In this document: piece after piece, positions 1,445 through 47,496 of the stretch
How the letters are laid out: every line of letters begins with the position of its first letter
How positions within the stretch are numbered: the stretch's first letter is position 1
Sequence record: PV231353.1
Length of the DNA stretch: 64,000 bases
Reading direction: 5' to 3' (one strand)
Translations under genes and position numbers: made by a program
Notes under the pieces: generated by a model
What the model saw: the letters and a program-made list of their open reading frames with translations, nothing else
Database searches by the model: none
Told to the model about the DNA's origin: nothing

Positions 1445-1869
1445 TGGCAGACGTCCTTGGCGTCGCGCGCGGTCACGGGCGACATGTAGGTGTCGGGGTT
1501 CCAGGCGCCGGGCGTGCTGCCGCCATAGATATAATCGCCCGGCGCGGGCGGCGTCATCGACCCGCCGTTGCTGGCGACCTTGCCCGGATTGGCGTAGGCC
1601 GAGAGCCACAGGCGCCCGTCGCTTCCGCGCAGGACGAATTGGCCGTTCTGGCGGCAGACGCGGGCGATGGTCATGCGCCATGCGTAGTTGAGCTTGGCCT
1701 TCTTGGCGGCCTCGTCCCGCAACCACTGTTCATGCCCCAGGCGCGCCCAGCGCGCCTTCTTGGCCACGAGGTCCTTGTGCTCCTGCGACCAGAGAGGGTG
1801 GTTGTACTCGTCGCACGCCGAAAGGCTGATCCCGGCGATGACAAGCAGGAGGAGAGCGCCGCGCCGCAT
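1441..1869 (-). CDS. putative lipoprotein
   Basis: MRRGALLLLVIAGISLSA-C: basic N-terminus, hydrophobic core and lipobox; start coupled to the nampt stop (TGATG). Confidence 0.7.
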   Translation of the reverse strand: MRRGALLLLVIAGISLSACDEYNHPLWSQEHKDLVAKKARWARLGHEQWLRDEAAKKAKLNYAWRMTIARVCRQNGQFVLRGSDGRLWLSAYANPGKVASNGGSMTPPAPGDYIYGGSTPGAWNPDTYMSPVTARDAKDVCQ

Positions 1870-3299
1870 CAGGCGATCTCGTAGCCGGCCGCGACCCGTT
1901 CGCGGATTTGGTCCAGGGTCGCCGGCTCCAGCACCTTGCCGGTGTTGAAGACCTCGTCCAGCAGGTCGTGCTCGACCACATCGCCCTCGTGGACCGTGAT
2001 GGTCTCGAAGCGGCCGTCCTCGGTCGTCACCAGGGCCAGCTTGCCCTTCTTGGAGACCTTGCCCGGATCGGTGATCGGGTCCTTGTAGATTTCGACCCAC
2101 TCGCCGTTGATCTCCTGGGCCGAGGACTTCATCGCCCACTTGTTGGTGTCGCGGTCCAGGTCGCCCGTCGCCAGACCGCCGCCGGCGGCCGTGATGATGC
2201 TGTCAGGCGCGACGCCGATGTTACGGGCCAGGATGAACGGGTCCATGTGGGTGTTCTCGTTCATGCCGTCGCCCTGGAGGACCTTGGCGCCCAGGTTCAG
2301 CACGTCCAGGCCGTGGCTGTTCTTCTGGGTCCCGAAGCCGGCGGCCAGGGTCTGGACGACCGGCGGGATGACCTTGAAGAGGTCACCCGAATCCGGGCGG
2401 CAGACCGGGGTCAGGTTCTTATTGGCGATCAGTTCCTTGCGCTCGGTCAGCTTGCCGGCGAAGCGGAAGATGTCCCAGGTGTCGCCGACCAGCGAGACGA
2501 TCGAGCCGGGAGGCGCCTTGTTCAGGCAGTGGTCGATATAGTCGTCGTCGTTGTCGCGCCCGAACGCGCACGAGATCGAGTGCTCCGAGGCCAGGACCGA
2601 ATAGCCCGACATCTCGCTGAAGTAGTTGATATTCGCCGCCCGCACGCCGGGGACGTTGTCCGAGCCCTGGAAGTGGAAGAGGTGGGCGATGCCGGCCAGG
2701 ACCGAGTGGTCATAGCCCATGGTCCCGCGCGAGGAGAAGTCGAGGAAGGCGAACGGCGACATCGGGGTGTCGCTGTTGGCTTCCCAGAAGCTCTTGATCC
2801 GCGTGGCGATGCCGTTGACGCGCGCGGCGATCGTCGAGGCCGTCCAGACGTCGCGCAGGATCATGGTCTCGAAGTAGGAGGTCAGCCAGGGCAGGCGCGG
2901 GTCGAGGTTCTCGACCGAGATCAGCGCGTTGCGGATCGGGATCATCACGCCCTCGGGCGCGGCCTTGATCCGCAGCGGGAGATAGCCGCCGTACTCGTTC
3001 AGGATGATCTCCCAGCCGTCGCGGTTGAACGGCAGGCCGTGGGCCGGCACGAACGCGGCCATCTCCTCGACGTTGGCGCGGGTGACCGGCCTGCCGAGCT
3101 TCTGGAAGAGCAGGCGCTGGAACGCCGCCAGCATCACCTTGGGATAGCGCCCGCCCCGGCTCTCGATGTAGCTGTAGACGGTGGTGCAGCCGTCACGATA
3201 GAGCACCCAGTGCCCCAGCTTGTAGCTGTCGGTGTCGGCGATCAGATTGTAGGTCTCGACGGGCGGCGTGCCGTCCCAGTTGGCGAGGTCAAAGGCCAT
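1869..3299 (-). CDS. nadV: nicotinamide phosphoribosyltransferase (NAMPT)
   Basis: DTDSYK, YSYIESRGG, DFSSRG, SEHS, RPDSGD, QGDG, RDT..WAMK, KDPITD.GK.SKKG motifs. Confidence 0.95.
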   Translation of the reverse strand: MAFDLANWDGTPPVETYNLIADTDSYKLGHWVLYRDGCTTVYSYIESRGGRYPKVMLAAFQRLLFQKLGRPVTRANVEEMAAFVPAHGLPFNRDGWEIILNEYGGYLPLRIKAAPEGVMIPIRNALISVENLDPRLPWLTSYFETMILRDVWTASTIAARVNGIATRIKSFWEANSDTPMSPFAFLDFSSRGTMGYDHSVLAGIAHLFHFQGSDNVPGVRAANINYFSEMSGYSVLASEHSISCAFGRDNDDDYIDHCLNKAPPGSIVSLVGDTWDIFRFAGKLTERKELIANKNLTPVCRPDSGDLFKVIPPVVQTLAAGFGTQKNSHGLDVLNLGAKVLQGDGMNENTHMDPFILARNIGVAPDSIITAAGGGLATGDLDRDTNKWAMKSSAQEINGEWVEIYKDPITDPGKVSKKGKLALVTTEDGRFETITVHEGDVVEHDLLDEVFNTGKVLEPATLDQIRERVAAGYEIA

Positions 3300-3313
3300 G
3301 ATGAGGTCCCCCT

Positions 3314-4555
3314 TTAAGCGTTGAGGCTGAGCATGCGGTCCACGATGAAGGCGTGGTCCTCGAAGGTGTCGCCGGGGTCGATCTCCGAGATCGGGTCCCA
3401 GTCGGCGGCGGCGGCGTCGTCATGGCCCTGCACGTGCGGCAGACCCAGGCCCAGAGGCGGGGGCGGCAGGACGAAGTGATAGGCCGTGGAGATGATGTGG
3501 GCGCGCCGCGAGCGGTGCGGGTCGTCGAACACCTGGGGATCGCCGATCTGATAGCGGCGCAGCAGGTGCATCGCCTTCAGCACGCAGTCGGGCGCCGGCG
3601 GGGCGGCGGACTTGGTCTTCTCGGCCGCCTTGCACGCTTCCAGCCACGCGCGGTACTCCGGCAGATGAGCGGGCGGGATGAACAGCGCCGTCTCCTCGAT
3701 CACCTCGCGCAGGCAGTTGTCCATCAGCGAGCGACCGGCGTTGACGAAACCGCCCGGCAGGGCTTTCATCCCAAAGCCCTCGGGGCCGCCGCGCCGGATG
3801 CGCAGGATGTGACCGGCGCACTCGACGACCGCGTCCACCGCCAGGAAGGGGCCAGCGCCCCAGCGTTCGCGATAGGCGTCCTCGGCCTTCTTCTGCGACA
3901 TCAGATAGGCGTATTCCGGGCGGTCCCGGAACCGCTCCAGGAAATCGATCGTGCTCGGGTAGAGGAGATCGGTCCAGGCGTAGCCGTTGTCGCTCCACGA
4001 GGTGTCGCGGAAGTTGACGGCGCCGGCGAAATAGGCCTTGCGCAGGGCGGTGGCGTTGACCCCGTTGTCCTCGACCGGGGTGTAGGGCCATTGCGGGAAC
4101 CACGTCAGATACTCGCTGGTGGCGTCGCGGATGTTGCCGATCAGGGTGACGCGCGGACGCAGGACCTTGGAGGCGTTCTTGACGTGCTGCTGGACCTGGG
4201 CGATCCACTCGTTCTTCCCGTAGGGGCCGGTGTCATTGAGCGCGATCACCTCGGTGCGGCTCAGGAGATCAAGCACGAGGGCGGCGTGATCGTCCACGCG
4301 GCTCTCGACGGTCTCGGCCTCGCGGCCGGCGTCGGCCTCTTCCTGGGCCAGATCGCTGAGCCCGTTCAGGATCATCTCCTGGCGCTCGCGGAAGGTGAAG
4401 GGGTTGCGGGTGTCGCGGGCGAGATTGGCCGAACCGACGAACCACAGGACCTTGCGGGCCTTGCGGCGCGCGGCCTGGAAGAGGCGGAAGTGACCCATCC
4501 TGGTCACCAACTGCCCCCGCGTGATCAGCACCGCGATGTCATATTCGAAGTCCAC
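3314..4555 (-). CDS. nadM: bifunctional NMN adenylyltransferase / Nudix (ADP-ribose pyrophosphatase)
   Basis: N-terminal nucleotidyltransferase (MGH, GSAN..RDTRNPFTF.ER, NATALR); C-terminal AVDAVV, LPGGFV, REVIEET, FDDPHRS.R, FEDH. Confidence 0.9.
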   Translation of the reverse strand: MDFEYDIAVLITRGQLVTRMGHFRLFQAARRKARKVLWFVGSANLARDTRNPFTFRERQEMILNGLSDLAQEEADAGREAETVESRVDDHAALVLDLLSRTEVIALNDTGPYGKNEWIAQVQQHVKNASKVLRPRVTLIGNIRDATSEYLTWFPQWPYTPVEDNGVNATALRKAYFAGAVNFRDTSWSDNGYAWTDLLYPSTIDFLERFRDRPEYAYLMSQKKAEDAYRERWGAGPFLAVDAVVECAGHILRIRRGGPEGFGMKALPGGFVNAGRSLMDNCLREVIEETALFIPPAHLPEYRAWLEACKAAEKTKSAAPPAPDCVLKAMHLLRRYQIGDPQVFDDPHRSRRAHIISTAYHFVLPPPPLGLGLPHVQGHDDAAAADWDPISEIDPGDTFEDHAFIVDRMLSLNA

Positions 4556-10134: not shown

Positions 10135-11369
<1,235 letters not shown>

Positions 11370-21509: not shown

Positions 21510-21772
21510 GCGGTGACCCCTTCGGCGCCGAGGGTCTTGCGCCACGTGGCGACATCGCCCAGGAGTTCGCCGCTCAAGAAGCGGTCCTCATAGATCGGCA
21601 CGTCGCCATCCGCCAGGGCCAGGAGGTCGAGTTGCGCGTCGATCCACTGTCGCTCGCACATATAGGGCTGGTGACGCGCGGTGGCGCGGATGCCGTACTG
21701 GAGGCGCCTGTCGTAGAGCGTCAGGCGCAACCCGGCGTGATCCCGCTCGATCCAGATATCAGGCCGCTTCAT
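21506..21772 (-). CDS. hypothetical protein
   Basis: 88 aa, in chain. Confidence 0.65.
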   Translation of the reverse strand: MKRPDIWIERDHAGLRLTLYDRRLQYGIRATARHQPYMCERQWIDAQLDLLALADGDVPIYEDRFLSGELLGDVATWRKTLGAEGVTA

Positions 21773-22787
21773 GGGCGGCCTCCTCGCCTTCTTCCTCGGC
21801 CGGCGCCAGGGTCGAGCCCGAGTATTCCTGGAGGTGATCGACCGCCTTCTGGGCCAGCGACGCGGCGGTGAAGATGAAGCGCTTGTCGCCCTTCAGGACC
21901 TTCAGCCACGAGGCGACGTAGGAGGCGTGATCCTCGCGGACCTCCGGGGTCAGGCCCAGCACCGCGCAGAGGAAGGCCGAGCCGAGTTCGGCGACCAGTT
22001 CCTCGGCGGCGTAGGCCTCGTCCCCGAAGCGCTTGCCGAACTCGCGGTTCAGGCGGTTCTCGCGACCGGTCCAGTGGACGAACTCGTGACCGAGGGTGGC
22101 GTAGTAGCTCTCCTCGTCGCGGAAGTCGTCGAACTGGGGCATCTGGATGAAGTCCAGGTGCGGCGAGAAGAAGGCCCGGTGCCCGCCGTGGCGCACCTCG
22201 GCGCCCGTGGCGGCGAAGAACTTCTCGACCGCCGCGTTACGCTCCAGGACCCGCTTGGCTTCCTCGGCGGGCGTCGCCGGGGCCGGAGCGGGCTTCTGGT
22301 AGAAGCGCTCGGGCAGGCCGTCGATCTGCTCGACGTTGAACACCAGATAGGACTTCAGGAACGGGATCATCCGCTCGACGTCCTTGCCGTTCGAGTCCTT
22401 CTCGGTCTTCTTGAACTTGGAGGCGTAGACGATCAGTTCGGATTTCTCGCCCTTGCGGACCTGACCGCCCAGGCCCCTGGCTTGGTTGTAGGTCATCCAG
22501 GTCGGGTTGGTGTAGCCGCGCTCCTGGGCGGCGGCCCACAGGAGGACCACGTTGATCCCGGTGTATCGCTGGCCCGTCACGCGGCGCGGATAGATCGCCA
22601 TGCCAGCCGAGGCGCCGCCGGGAGCCGACCACGGCTTCAACCAGGGACGCACGCCGGCGTCGAGCGCGGCGATGATCTTGTCGGTGATCTTGGCATACAA
22701 GTCGACCTTGACGGTCTCCGTCGAAGCTTTGCCGCTCTCCTTGGTGGAGCGCTTGGCCGGCTTCTTCTTGGCGGTGGTCTTGGTCAT
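21759..22787 (-). CDS. ardC: ArdC-family antirestriction / ssDNA-binding protein
   Basis: PW.KPW, YTGIN, WMTY.QA..LGGQVRKGEK, VFNVEQIDG, YYATL.HE..HWTG, Y..EELVAE. Confidence 0.9.
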   Translation of the reverse strand: MTKTTAKKKPAKRSTKESGKASTETVKVDLYAKITDKIIAALDAGVRPWLKPWSAPGGASAGMAIYPRRVTGQRYTGINVVLLWAAAQERGYTNPTWMTYNQARGLGGQVRKGEKSELIVYASKFKKTEKDSNGKDVERMIPFLKSYLVFNVEQIDGLPERFYQKPAPAPATPAEEAKRVLERNAAVEKFFAATGAEVRHGGHRAFFSPHLDFIQMPQFDDFRDEESYYATLGHEFVHWTGRENRLNREFGKRFGDEAYAAEELVAELGSAFLCAVLGLTPEVREDHASYVASWLKVLKGDKRFIFTAASLAQKAVDHLQEYSGSTLAPAEEEGEEAAHEAA

Positions 22788-22857
22788 CAGGGCCTCCTCG
22801 TTGTCGTCGAGGGGGTTCTAGCCGGCGACCGCGACCTTGTCAACACTCTCGCGCCAG
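22788..22857 (-). promoter_or_regulatory. promoter-leader cassette
   Basis: TGGCGCGAGAGTG-TTGACA(22838-22843)-N17-TAGAAC-CCCCTCG-ACGACAA-CGAGGAGG. Confidence 0.9.
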
Positions 22858-33260: not shown

Positions 33261-33334
33261 GCGGCCTCCTTCTGTCGTTGTGTCGACATAAGCTCTAGCC
33301 GTGGTTTTCCGGCCTGTCAACACACAACCGCCAA
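33261..33334 (-). promoter_or_regulatory. promoter-leader cassette
   Basis: TTGGC-N6-GTG-TTGACA(33315-33320)-N17-TAGAGC ... ACACAACGACAG-AAGGAGG. Confidence 0.85.
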
Positions 33335-42286: not shown

Positions 42287-42358
42287 CTGGCGCGAAAGTG
42301 TTGACAGCCTGAAGGGACTCCTCTACACCCACGCTCGATGACAACGAGAGGAGTTCCC
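42287..42358 (+). promoter_or_regulatory. promoter-leader cassette
   Basis: TGGC-N6-GTG-TTGACA(42301-42306)-N17-TACACC ... CTCG-ATGACAA-CGAG-AGGAG. Confidence 0.8.
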
Positions 42359-44116
42359 ATGGCCGAGACCATGACCCTGAGTTTCCGGATCGAAGGCGCC
42401 GCCCTGGTGGAGCGGGCGCGCGATCGCGTCATCGAAGGTAACTGGGAGCACGGCCTGCGCATCCTGGTCGAGGGCCTGCACGGCATGTCCTACGAACTCG
42501 CGATCGACATCCTGCTCGGCAAGCACACCCTGGGCGGCTGGTCCTCGGACCCCGAAGGCGTCTATCTCACCGACCAGGACCCGGAGGACGAGACTTTCAA
42601 GCGTTACAAGGAAACCCTCGACTACCAGTTCGCCGGCGTCTTCAAGCTGGAGGATGGCCGGATCATGCGTCCCTACGCCGTGGTCGACAGCTTCTCCAAG
42701 ATCGACTTCGACTCCAGGGTCCGCTTCCTGCGGCTGGCCCAGGGCTCTGACCCGGTGTTCTCGCGCCCCAAGCGCTATCACGACACCCGCGCCGAGATCA
42801 ACGGCGAGGAGATCGACTGGGCCTATCGCGCCCTGCACTACGCCGACGAGCCGACCCAGGACATCGTCCGTCTGGTCCGTATGGAGGGCTTCCATCCCAC
42901 GATCCGGGCGGCGGTCCTGTTCAAGGAAGTCCGCGACTATCCCAAGCTCCTGCTTCCGAAGGTCGAGACCGACGCCCAGAAGGCCGTCGATGTGGCGATC
43001 AAGGCCCAGCGCGGCCTCTCCAAGCGCGGGCACGTCTACGAGTATGGCGCTGGTCAGGACTTCGACAAGGAGCACTACAAGACCACCATGGGGATCGATC
43101 AGGTCCCCACCGCCTGGACCGTGCGCAATCCGAAGTACGTCGATCCCGACGCCAAGCTCGTCAAGGACACCCTGGCCGAGATCGACGCCCGCAAGGTCGC
43201 GCCGGCCTCCGATTACGCCGGCGCCATGAACCGTCTGATCAAGGACGAGGTGGACGGCGGCATGGACATCAGCACGGCCGTCGCCATGACCCAGGCCAAG
43301 ATGGCGCTGCTGGGCGGCATGGCCGAGGACCCCGAACAGCGCCTGCGGGCGATCAACGACGCCTACGCCGCCAAGTTCGAGAAGGCCGAGGGCCGCAGCG
43401 TCGAGGAGTACCGCAAGGCCATCATCACCCAGGCTGGCGATGACTTCTTCGATCTCGCGTACACGGATGTGGACGGCAAGGAGGTCGTCCTGAAGGTCCC
43501 GACCGCGCCGTTCGAGCAATGGGCTCTGTGGCGCACCGCCGGCGCCCATCTGGCCAAGCCCTGGAAGCGGGTGACCTACACCGGCTTCAAGACCTTCGGC
43601 GATGATCCCTACCACACCGACTGGGTGCTGGGCGCGGGGCTCAACCCCGAGGACTGGCCGGTCATCGAGGCCGACAATCCGCCGCTCCACAAGGCCGCCT
43701 GGGACAAGCGCTTCCGGGTCGCCGAGGAGAAGCTGGGCGGCAACATGCGCGTCCTGCTCGGCAAGGGCTTCGTGACCGGCAAGATCGTGATGCTCAAGCC
43801 GGGCGAGGCCCTGTCACCGGGCGAGATCGGTGTGATCCGCAACGCCGGCCCCGACTACGTCCAGGCCGCCCAGAGCGCGATCGAGCACAACACCGCCTTG
43901 ATCTGCGAGAACGGCGGCAGCGTCGCCCACCTCGTGGTCGAGTACCTGGACAAGCCCCTGCGCCTGACCCGGATCGAGAACGCGCGCAAGATTTTCAAGG
44001 ACGGCATGACCGTCTACCTCGACTTTGACAAGTCGACGCGAGAGATCGCCAAGGGCGGCCTGGGGCCGAGCCCTGCCGATCTTGGCCTCGACACGGAATG
44101 GGAGATTTTCGAATGA
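42359..44116 (+). CDS. large protein with C-terminal PEP-utilising enzyme mobile (phospho-His) domain
   Basis: G.VTGKIV ... GEIGVI....PDY ... ALICENGGSVAH ... FKDGMTVYLD. Confidence 0.75.
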   Translation: MAETMTLSFRIEGAALVERARDRVIEGNWEHGLRILVEGLHGMSYELAIDILLGKHTLGGWSSDPEGVYLTDQDPEDETFKRYKETLDYQFAGVFKLEDGRIMRPYAVVDSFSKIDFDSRVRFLRLAQGSDPVFSRPKRYHDTRAEINGEEIDWAYRALHYADEPTQDIVRLVRMEGFHPTIRAAVLFKEVRDYPKLLLPKVETDAQKAVDVAIKAQRGLSKRGHVYEYGAGQDFDKEHYKTTMGIDQVPTAWTVRNPKYVDPDAKLVKDTLAEIDARKVAPASDYAGAMNRLIKDEVDGGMDISTAVAMTQAKMALLGGMAEDPEQRLRAINDAYAAKFEKAEGRSVEEYRKAIITQAGDDFFDLAYTDVDGKEVVLKVPTAPFEQWALWRTAGAHLAKPWKRVTYTGFKTFGDDPYHTDWVLGAGLNPEDWPVIEADNPPLHKAAWDKRFRVAEEKLGGNMRVLLGKGFVTGKIVMLKPGEALSPGEIGVIRNAGPDYVQAAQSAIEHNTALICENGGSVAHLVVEYLDKPLRLTRIENARKIFKDGMTVYLDFDKSTREIAKGGLGPSPADLGLDTEWEIFE

Positions 44117-44409
44117 GCGAGAAGTGGCAACCGGTGGAGGAAGCCGCCAATAACCTCTCCGGCTGGAACGTGCGCTCGGCCCAGATGGCGGTCGCCGGCG
44201 GGACCCTCTACCGCACGATCGTCTCGCGCGACAGCCAGGGCGCCGCGCCGGCGGTGAGCACCACCTTCATCCCGGACGCCCCGCCGCAGTTCACCGTCCA
44301 GGTCACCGACGAGGACCTCCGGAGCCTTGCCGAGTGCAAGGACGTCGCCAGGGCGCGCAGCCTGTTCCGGGGCATCCTGAAGGCTCACGGCCTGGAGATC
44401 ATGGCCTGA
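44113..44409 (+). CDS. hypothetical protein
   Basis: Start MSEKWQP; ATGA overlap. Confidence 0.7.
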   Translation: MSEKWQPVEEAANNLSGWNVRSAQMAVAGGTLYRTIVSRDSQGAAPAVSTTFIPDAPPQFTVQVTDEDLRSLAECKDVARARSLFRGILKAHGLEIMA

Positions 44410-45696: not shown

Positions 45697-45929
45697 TCGA
45701 GCACGTCTGGCGCCGTGACCCGCGCGGTCCCGCCTATGGCTTCCAGCGCCTGGACCTGGACGAGGCGCTGAAGATCGTCGCGGTCGAGAAGCAGGACTTC
45801 CTCCTCCATCTGGTCGCGGTCCTGCACGAGAACAACCTCCTGCGCGACGATGACGTCATGGAACTGCTCGGCAAGGGCTGGGCGCTCGACCCTACGATCT
45901 CCACCACATCGACGAAGATTAGGCGTTGA
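45693..45929 (+). CDS. hypothetical protein
   Basis: 78 aa; stop lies inside the next -35 box. Confidence 0.65.
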   Translation: MIEHVWRRDPRGPAYGFQRLDLDEALKIVAVEKQDFLLHLVAVLHENNLLRDDDVMELLGKGWALDPTISTTSTKIRR

Positions 45930-45982
45930 CAACACTCTCGCGCCAACATAGAACCGCCCTCGACGACAACGAGGAGGCTTCC
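45926..45982 (+). promoter_or_regulatory. promoter-leader cassette, flipped-element type
   Basis: TTGACA-ACACTCTCGCGCCAACA-TAGAAC ... CCTCG-ACGACAA-CGAGGAGG. Confidence 0.9.
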
Positions 45983-46366
45983 ATGAAGCTCGCGACCCAA
46001 GACCGCTCCGACCCGCGCTTGAACGCGCCCTACCGCCTCGCCAAGGCGGTGTTCTACTACGGCGGCCCGCACGAGTACCCGATCCACCTGAACGACTGGT
46101 GGAACGAGGTGACGCCGGCCGACGTGGAGGATCGCATCTCCGATCTCTGCCGCGAGCTTTCCAAGCTGTCGGGCCAGACCCTGGCGCCGGCGACCTTCTA
46201 CGAGCGGATGAAGCTGGGCTTCGTCGACCTCCCGGAGGTCAAGGACGAGGACTTCGCCGCCCTGTCGGAAGCGACCCGCAACAACCTGCTGGCCATGCAG
46301 GACCGCTTCTCGGTCCACGGCAGCGGCTTCATGCTCTACTGGAACATCGTGAAAGAGGAGGCCTGA
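45983..46366 (+). CDS. hypothetical protein
   Basis: Start MKLATQDR behind SD. Confidence 0.8.
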   Translation: MKLATQDRSDPRLNAPYRLAKAVFYYGGPHEYPIHLNDWWNEVTPADVEDRISDLCRELSKLSGQTLAPATFYERMKLGFVDLPEVKDEDFAALSEATRNNLLAMQDRFSVHGSGFMLYWNIVKEEA

Positions 46367-47427: not shown

Positions 47428-47496
47428 CTGGCGTTCTTGTGTTGACAAGGCCGGAGCCGCTGGCCTAGAACGTCGTGGACGACAACAGGAGGGACC
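47428..47496 (+). promoter_or_regulatory. promoter-leader cassette
   Basis: TGGC-N6-GTG-TTGACA(47442-47447)-N17-TAGAAC ... ACGACAAC-AGGAGG. Confidence 0.9.

Follow-up and report, generated by a model that had tools for sequence, protein, structure and literature searches.

Enzymes that carry a phosphoryl group on a histidine of a mobile, swivelling domain are known from central metabolism (phosphoenolpyruvate (PEP) synthase, PEPS, and pyruvate phosphate dikinase, PPDK), from sugar uptake (enzyme I, EI, of the PEP-dependent phosphotransferase system, PTS), from antibiotic resistance (rifampin phosphotransferase, RPH), and from aromatic catabolism (HpeHI, CreHI, and PpsAB). In the last three, the H or A component consists of a substrate-binding domain followed by a C-terminal swivel with the catalytic histidine, and the I or B component is an ATP-grasp protein (PMC12167813). 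ATP pyrophosphorylates the histidine, the gamma-phosphate is lost, and the beta-phosphate is handed to the substrate (PMC12167813). A phage phosphohistidine-swivel enzyme with an assigned role was not found in the searchable literature. The gene considered here encodes XTP78618.1 of Caulobacter phage RBC57 (PV231353.1, 208,414 bp), a phiCbK-like siphophage whose host is C. vibrioides CB15. The window that was analysed is the first 64 kb of this record, and window coordinates are identical to record coordinates.

On balance, it is somewhat probable that XTP78618.1 constitutes the phosphohistidine-carrier plus acceptor-site half (an “H-type” component) of a dikinase-like phosphotransferase, and that it represents a mostly phage-borne family of such proteins. 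In the proposed mechanism, His524 on the C-terminal swivel would accept a phosphoryl or pyrophosphoryl group from a nucleotide-binding partner, the phosphorylated swivel would swing onto the family-specific N-terminal and central domains, and a cluster composed of K411, D415, H419, and D421 would help to pass the phosphate to the substrate. The partner in some relatives would be a PPDK_N ATP-grasp domain, encoded immediately downstream or fused to the family protein. The gene and its domains are as follows (aa, amino acids; pLDDT, per-residue confidence of the structure model).

42359..44116, plus strand: coding sequence (CDS) of XTP78618.1, 585 aa plus stop, “hypothetical protein” in the GenBank annotation of PV231353.1
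42359..43054, plus strand: family-specific N-terminal alpha+beta domain, aa 1-232, pLDDT mostly 84-98
43055..43399, plus strand: variable linker, aa 233-347, disordered at 235-282 and then a helical hairpin region
43400..43738, plus strand: conserved central domain, aa 348-460, with QAGDDFFDL, VPTAPFEQW, and GFKTFGDDPYHTDW, pLDDT mostly 79-98
43739..44053, plus strand: PEP-utiliser “mobile” swivelling phosphohistidine domain, aa 461-565, with ENGGSVAH at 517-524 and the carrier His524 at 43928-43930

The C-terminus of XTP78618.1 is a PEP-utiliser swivel domain, and this assignment is solid despite a missing Pfam match. The domain shows the beta/beta/alpha fold of PF00391 over about 100 residues, with 20 residues following it at the end of the protein in the structure model, and GGSVAH (residues 519-524) supplies the GG-x-x-x-His motif, its histidine lying on the catalytic histidine of RPH. 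XTP78618.1 itself did not reach the PF00391 gathering score and gave no PF00391 match at E<=1 in the Pfam scan, because the phiCbK clade has diverged after the histidine and lost an arginine there, reading AHLVVEYLDK in place of the usual family pattern AHLxxVxRE. Among 15 homologs, 10 matched PF00391 (best E 5e-8), and several homologs are named “PEP-utilising enzyme mobile domain-containing protein” in UniRef. The family profile matched the C-terminal His domain of Listeria RPH (5FBS, E 5e-10) with the two histidines aligned and, among PDB sequences, also matched PEP synthases and the C-terminal domain of Geobacillus pyruvate kinase; structure comparison likewise placed the swivel closest to the RPH/PEP-synthase/pyruvate-kinase type, at 25-28% identity. 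In 147 sequences with 25-40% identity to the query, G519 and H524 were invariant and G520 was nearly so. The swivelling His-carrier pattern that a first-pass annotation had read from the DNA was thus borne out, including the position of ENGGSVAH and of its histidine codon, and two of the points on which that annotation had staked its proposal, a PF00391-type fold and a conserved histidine, were found. Direct searches with XTP78618.1 in Pfam, PDB, NCBIfam, and PADLOC returned just a sub-threshold DUF7097 match (E 0.03), chance apolipoprotein matches, and sub-threshold matches at the C-terminus.

The two conserved domains that precede the swivel match no known fold. The N-terminal domain is marked by the conserved residues F9, G13, R21, G42, G54, P105, D116, R157, Y161, and P195, and the linker after it varies in length, being shorter in many homologs. 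The same 147 sequences show no change at two residues of the central domain, H419 (43613-43615) and D421 (43619-43621), and hardly any at K411 and D415. It is proposed from this conservation that the central domain with its K411/D415/H419/D421 cluster is the acceptor or active site, likely a catalytic or metal site. A model of residues 1-462, built separately (pLDDT 84), was searched whole, a procedure in which single-domain matches can be missed, and Foldseek retrieved from PDB, AFDB, and BFVD no fold outside the family, the AFDB cluster and BFVD matches being family members only. A VIA-wide search likewise yielded no known fold for the N-terminal region. The same model gave TM scores (structural similarity) below 0.3 throughout a shape search of the ESM Atlas. 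None of 116 N-terminal pieces matched Pfam, the N-terminal profile matched no PDB sequence, and its hhalign comparison with the PPDK_N profile gave a probability of 0.4%. On the strength of the structure, Pfam, profile, and hhalign searches together, an ATP-grasp domain, a rifampin-binding domain, or another known fold was rejected for the N-terminus. A language-model lead that placed residues 1-232 near Rph_4th/PPDK_N clusters (score 0.88) was backed by no alignment or structure test and was dropped.

Pfam also found no PF02896 PEP/pyruvate TIM barrel, PF01326, or PF05524 in XTP78618.1. The first-pass statement that the protein has neither a PEP-binding barrel nor an ATP-grasp motif, and an unrecognised N-terminus, therefore agrees with the Pfam, Foldseek, Atlas, PDB-profile, and hhalign searches. 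The N-terminal domain also occurs alone, since open reading frames (ORFs) of about 371 aa in three metagenome contigs (L067, L068, and L069) match profile positions 4-218 only and have no central or swivel domain.

In its general build, XTP78618.1 resembles the H components of the two-component dikinases. In HpeHI, CreHI, and PpsAB, as in the family, an upstream region is followed by a C-terminal swivel, with the catalytic histidine about 50-60 residues from the end; XTP78618.1, with H524 among 585 residues, has this arrangement. Relatives of XTP78618.1 share the linkage as well, with an ATP-grasp gene immediately downstream in seven family loci, plus one fusion, which recalls the H-then-I order of the bacterial operons. 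The upstream parts differ. Nothing detectable is common to the RPH-like substrate-binding domain of the HpeH type and the upstream 460 residues of the family, and when the family was compared by hhalign with a bacterial H component (in locus L035), the swivel domain alone aligned, in agreement with blastp. The family consequently stands outside the HpeH-type subfamily, built and linked alike but sharing only the swivel. Unlike those systems, RBC57 has no neighbouring I component anywhere in its genome, and the two-component dikinases serve aromatic catabolism, whereas the family occurs in a phage context.

Other swivel enzymes are more distant in architecture. Listeria RPH (PDB 5HV1/5FBS) carries ATP-grasp and rifampin-binding domains before its swivel, both absent here, and the NCBIfam RPH models, with cut-offs of 999-1700 bits, reached 13-19 bits in three homologs and did not match XTP78618.1. 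PEP synthase and PPDK have in common with XTP78618.1 the phosphohistidine swivel and its GGxxxH motif but possess a PPDK_N ATP-grasp domain, a central swivel, and a C-terminal PEP/pyruvate TIM barrel, whereas the swivel of XTP78618.1 is terminal. Enzyme I and EI-Ntr show 6-11% identity to the XTP78618.1 swivel, which lacks the HPr-binding helical insert of enzyme I: model residues 461-565, one contiguous block of 105 residues, map onto residues 5-234 of the EI chain. The PEP-binding C-domain of enzyme I is absent as well. Pyruvate kinase of Geobacillus stearothermophilus (PDB 2E28) ends in an extra domain related to the swivel, but the rest of XTP78618.1 is not pyruvate kinase.

A “pyruvate phosphate dikinase” of Vibrio phage VP-RY-9 was considered as a family member and rejected, its architecture being different and the swivel domain alone being shared. 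This protein of vB_VpaS_VP-RY-9 (MW411580.1, L032:4464-6557) has 697 aa with a PPDK_N domain, a central swivel, and a C-terminus of about 190 aa with no assignment, and similar dikinase-like proteins are present in sm030, 13VO501A, and VA-RY-4. In the VP-RY-9 locus, a dual-specificity phosphatase gene lies two genes downstream, and a “pyruvate decarboxylase” gene is nearby.

Recurrent linkage to ATP-grasp genes was found in relatives of XTP78618.1. A Pfam scan of the larger neighbours gave one PPDK_N match, to the ORF that follows the family gene in the viral contig L021 (E 7e-48); the alignment of the L021 family protein with XTP78618.1 spans the N-terminal and swivel domains as well as the central motif (DDRYHTDW). 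A hidden Markov model from 110 stand-alone PPDK_N proteins was then run against all fetched loci, including 35 metagenome loci. A PPDK_N ATP-grasp ORF was present at eight of 58 family loci, or eight of about 44 that extend 1 kb or more beyond the family gene on its downstream side. In seven loci (L021, L058, L070, L066, L061, L064, and L065), it follows the family gene directly, on the same strand, and in L071 the domain is fused to the C-terminus of the family protein. The adjoining PPDK_N proteins are either stand-alone, with about 225-290 aa (L021:6706-7536), or fused (L071:5657-7651); the 665-aa fusion runs from family N-terminal to central, swivel, and ATP-grasp domains, an order not seen in PEPS, PPDK, or RPH. 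The pairs fall into three separate lineages of the family tree, in loci of 22-66% G+C content. All partnered family proteins are full length and keep their upstream domains. The N-terminal domain is thus no stand-in for an ATP-grasp, since it is kept beside one and is unrelated to PPDK_N. Among cellular proteins, the nearest relatives of the L021 ATP-grasp lie in bacterial operons composed of TetR, a protein of 562 aa ending in a PEP-utiliser domain, a 266-aa PPDK_N protein, and a methyltransferase, an arrangement typical of two-component dikinases.

The invariant histidine with its GG motif, the second polar cluster, and the pairing or fusion with PPDK_N in relatives all favour a novel kinase or phosphotransferase, one of two functions that had been suggested for the protein from its sequence.

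Three of the loci with paired or fused members (L061, L065, and L071) are of low G+C content (22-24%), and a cellular instead of a viral origin is possible for some of these contigs. Pfam matches to acyltransferases, CDP-diglyceride synthase, an AMP-binding enzyme, and a major facilitator superfamily transporter were obtained for these three loci pooled with the high-G+C loci L021, L058, and L070.

The family itself is large. At E<=0.001, an exhaustive profile search retrieved 6,225 cluster representatives, of which 569 lie at E<1e-30, and the best 150 representatives are nearly all of 400-630 aa with the same architecture. Members reside mostly in phages of 57-578 kb; the viral contigs that carry them measure 85-578 kb, and the other contexts are jumbo-phage-like. 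Among named viruses, the family was found in the phiCbK-like phages, Caulobacter phage Seuss, Brevundimonas phage Bajun, several Vibrio phages, in two of which the protein is annotated “PEP-utilizing enzyme”, and virus Rctr197k. The hosts are unrelated, and G+C contents vary. When 185,579 species genomes were scanned with two peptide patterns, a single match was obtained, on a 25-kb contig of a metagenome-assembled genome. Strict restriction to phages was not upheld: the scan covered two peptide patterns only, and two low-G+C paired loci, for which lipid-metabolism neighbours are indicated, may be cellular.

No universal neighbour gene was found across the family loci. ORFs common to the loci proved to be antisense shadows of the high-G+C coding strand and not genes, an example in the window being a 455-aa ORF at 42323-43690 on the minus strand. 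The jumbo-phage contig L004 (JAWVHG010000191.1) has genes for a PRPP-synthase-like protein and an R2K-clade ATP-grasp (1058-1999 and 3031-3846), which precede the gene of the family by 6-9 kb; matches to R2K ATP-grasp were seen in two family loci, and no link of these to the family was established.

Within the phiCbK-like phages, XTP78618.1 is the ortholog of phiCbK CbK_gp239 and belongs over its full length to PHROG 11532 (function unknown), with 93-97% identity in the closest phages and 66-80% in CcrBL10 and the CcrRogue group. The ratio of nonsynonymous to synonymous substitution rates (dN/dS) against phage Karma is 0.15, indicating purifying selection; the gene is real, conserved, and maintained.

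Several results weigh against a dikinase half in RBC57. Most of them concern the missing partner. Pfam found no PPDK_N, PEP-utilizers_C, or ATP-grasp domain in the 46 RBC57 proteins that have at least 227 aa and no annotated replication or tail function; the L021 ATP-grasp, run by tblastn over the complete genome of 208 kb, gave a best E of 2.9; and hmmsearch with filters off, over all RBC57 ORFs of at least 50 aa, gave a best PPDK_N E of 0.67. The same ATP-grasp query found PPDK_N-like genes in 15 of 50,697 phage records by tblastn, and none of the 15 is a phage carrying the family. Pairing is confined to a minority of loci, and on the family tree the clade of XTP78618.1 has no paired member. 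The arginine that usually follows the His motif is absent from the phiCbK clade, which could mean an altered function; the upstream domains match no known substrate-binding fold, so that the substrate cannot be guessed; and the inter-domain geometry of the full model is unreliable (predicted TM score, pTM, 0.51). The gene that adjoins the CDS downstream is not an ATP-grasp gene either.

44113..44409, plus strand: 98-aa gene, its ATG overlapping the CDS stop (ATGA), present in phiCbK-like phages only

Judging by this overlap, the 98-aa gene is probably translationally coupled to that of XTP78618.1. Since RBC57 encodes no PPDK_N partner, the donor for its carrier histidine would have to be host-supplied or something other than a PPDK_N domain.

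The orphan state of XTP78618.1 would be accounted for if the protein were a self-contained enzyme, in which aa 1-232 or 348-460 form a new donor site for ATP, PEP, or another compound, and the ATP-grasp of relatives is accessory or alternative. Most members, and all cultured carrier phages, have no detectable ATP-grasp; two separately conserved domains precede the swivel, as would be expected for a donor plus an acceptor site; and the K/D/H/D cluster could bind a Mg-nucleotide. Nonetheless, P-loop, ATP-grasp, and kinase-like motifs are all absent from XTP78618.1, its fold search gave no match to a nucleotide-binding domain, and those relatives that do possess an ATP-grasp keep both upstream domains, neither of them obviously redundant. 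A self-contained enzyme is thus considered distinctly unlikely, and an H-type component with a separate donor is preferred.

The start and the upstream region of the gene contain two features.

42301..42329, plus strand: promoter-like element TTGACAGC-N13-TCTACACC, in the 79-nt gap upstream of the CDS
42346..42353, plus strand: Shine-Dalgarno sequence GAGAGGAG, 5 nt before the ATG at 42359, from reading of the sequence

In the ORF listing, a longer frame (42338..44116) is open from an ATG at 42338. The start is taken to be the ATG at 42359, where the homologs all begin and upstream of which GAGAGGAG would serve as ribosome-binding site. The element at 42301-42329 resembles the Caulobacter sigma-73 consensus, TTGACgS-N10-14-GCtANAWC. 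Four occurrences of this sigma-73-like pattern were counted in the window, against 0.48 +/- 0.64 expected from mononucleotide shuffles. The other three copies (TTGAC-N13-19-CTAnAnC, e.g. TTGACAAGGTCGCGGTCGCCGGCTAGAAC) are located at 22815-22843 (minus strand), 33292-33320 (minus strand), and 47442-47471 (plus strand), and are probably promoters from which host polymerase reads early transcription units.

The promoter of its own that the first-pass annotation had given the gene can be upheld in part: a standard sigma-70 scan found no promoter upstream of the gene, but the sigma-73-like element makes a promoter read by host RNA polymerase plausible. Long phiCbK-region contigs from RNA-seq runs of 2023, which probably belong to a phiCbK infection study, cover the gene; they carry no timing or strand information and may include DNA. 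Secondary placements of these contigs at 42287-42310 and 45926-45985 are due to short promoter-element repeats. In a published time-course, 41% of phiCbK genes were classed as early (PMC10688885).

The position of the gene, among genes of unknown function and behind a host-type promoter-like element, would suit a decoy, sink, or hijacker, the swivel of which receives its phosphate in trans from enzyme I/EI-Ntr, PPDK, or PEP synthase of the host, so that host phosphoryl flux is drained or redirected while the N-terminal part targets a host partner. The nitrogen-related system PTS-Ntr controls (p)ppGpp in Caulobacter, and the phiCbK clade, RBC57 included, has no phage-encoded ATP-grasp donor. 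The swivel domains of PPDK, PEPS, and EI are, to our knowledge, phosphorylated in cis, by the polypeptide or dimer to which they belong. Moreover, the XTP78618.1 swivel is of the RPH/PEPS/PK (pyruvate kinase) type and not of the EI type, with the HPr-binding insert missing; the invariance of H419/D421 and the ATP-grasp linkage of relatives point to real catalysis on a substrate; and a relay target specific to Caulobacter is unlikely because phages with unrelated hosts and G+C contents carry the family. The suggestion, also made from the sequence, of a phospho-acceptor or decoy tapping PTS-Ntr accordingly found no support, and this alternative, taken as a whole, is regarded as improbable.

A non-catalytic regulator or inhibitor, with the swivel as a binding module that modulates a host enzyme or a phage process and brings about no net phosphotransfer, after the model of the additional domain at the C-terminus of Geobacillus pyruvate kinase or of PPS-like regulators (one of which reportedly acts in transcription in haloarchaea), would agree with the divergence of the phiCbK clade in the residues after the histidine but is very unlikely in view of the absolute conservation of His524 and G519 and the near-absolute conservation of G520 across 147 divergent sequences, and of the linkage to ATP-grasp genes.

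The remaining observations concern other genes of RBC57. A nicotinamide phosphoribosyltransferase gene and the gene for a 413-aa unknown protein adjoin each other (1869-3299 and 3314-4555, both on the minus strand), and this region may be an NAD salvage or reconstitution module, as phages use against NAD-depleting defences. An RtcB-type RNA ligase is annotated as two CDSs (10135-10599 and 10722-11369, both minus strand), and the RBC57 genome may contain a split or intein-interrupted gene. An “antirestriction protein” is annotated at 21759-22787 on the minus strand, to which matches to an ArdC N-terminal domain (E 5e-42) and a zincin-like MPTase-PolyVal domain (E 2e-54) probably belong. When the large RBC57 proteins were scanned with Pfam, matches to NUDIX and to Intein, Hom_end_hint, and LAGLIDADG were also recorded, none of them tied to a particular protein, together with PhoH, C5 DNA methylase, ThyX, and Band-7 among the proteins scanned.

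XTP78618.1, read as an H-type component, lies within a long same-strand array of small unknown genes, and a role in host takeover or counter-defence fits with this position and with the host-type promoter-like element. A more far-reaching version holds that the family is a phage-specific dikinase whose target, in takeover or counter-defence, is a metabolite or macromolecule of the host or of its immunity, phosphorylated by means of a novel acceptor fold, and that the donor in phiCbK-like phages is host-supplied or wholly new; candidate targets would be a signalling nucleotide or an anti-phage small molecule. Taken as a whole, this version is unlikely, if worth keeping in mind. The swivel domain per se is not new, as databases flag it automatically. 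What appears to be undescribed in the searchable literature is a mostly phage-borne family with acceptor domains of no known fold, its pairing or fusion with an ATP-grasp, and its orphan state in phiCbK-like phages.

If the far-reaching version is correct, XTP78618.1 and its relatives would be the first phosphohistidine-swivel enzymes with a role in phage infection. As enzymes, they would bring a new chemistry to phages, the ATP-driven phosphorylation of a substrate via a mobile phosphohistidine domain, and would extend the dikinase superfamily by a new acceptor domain. That the protein is an orphan in phiCbK-like phages poses a testable question, namely the source of the phosphate, for which phiCbK and Caulobacter constitute a tractable genetic system.

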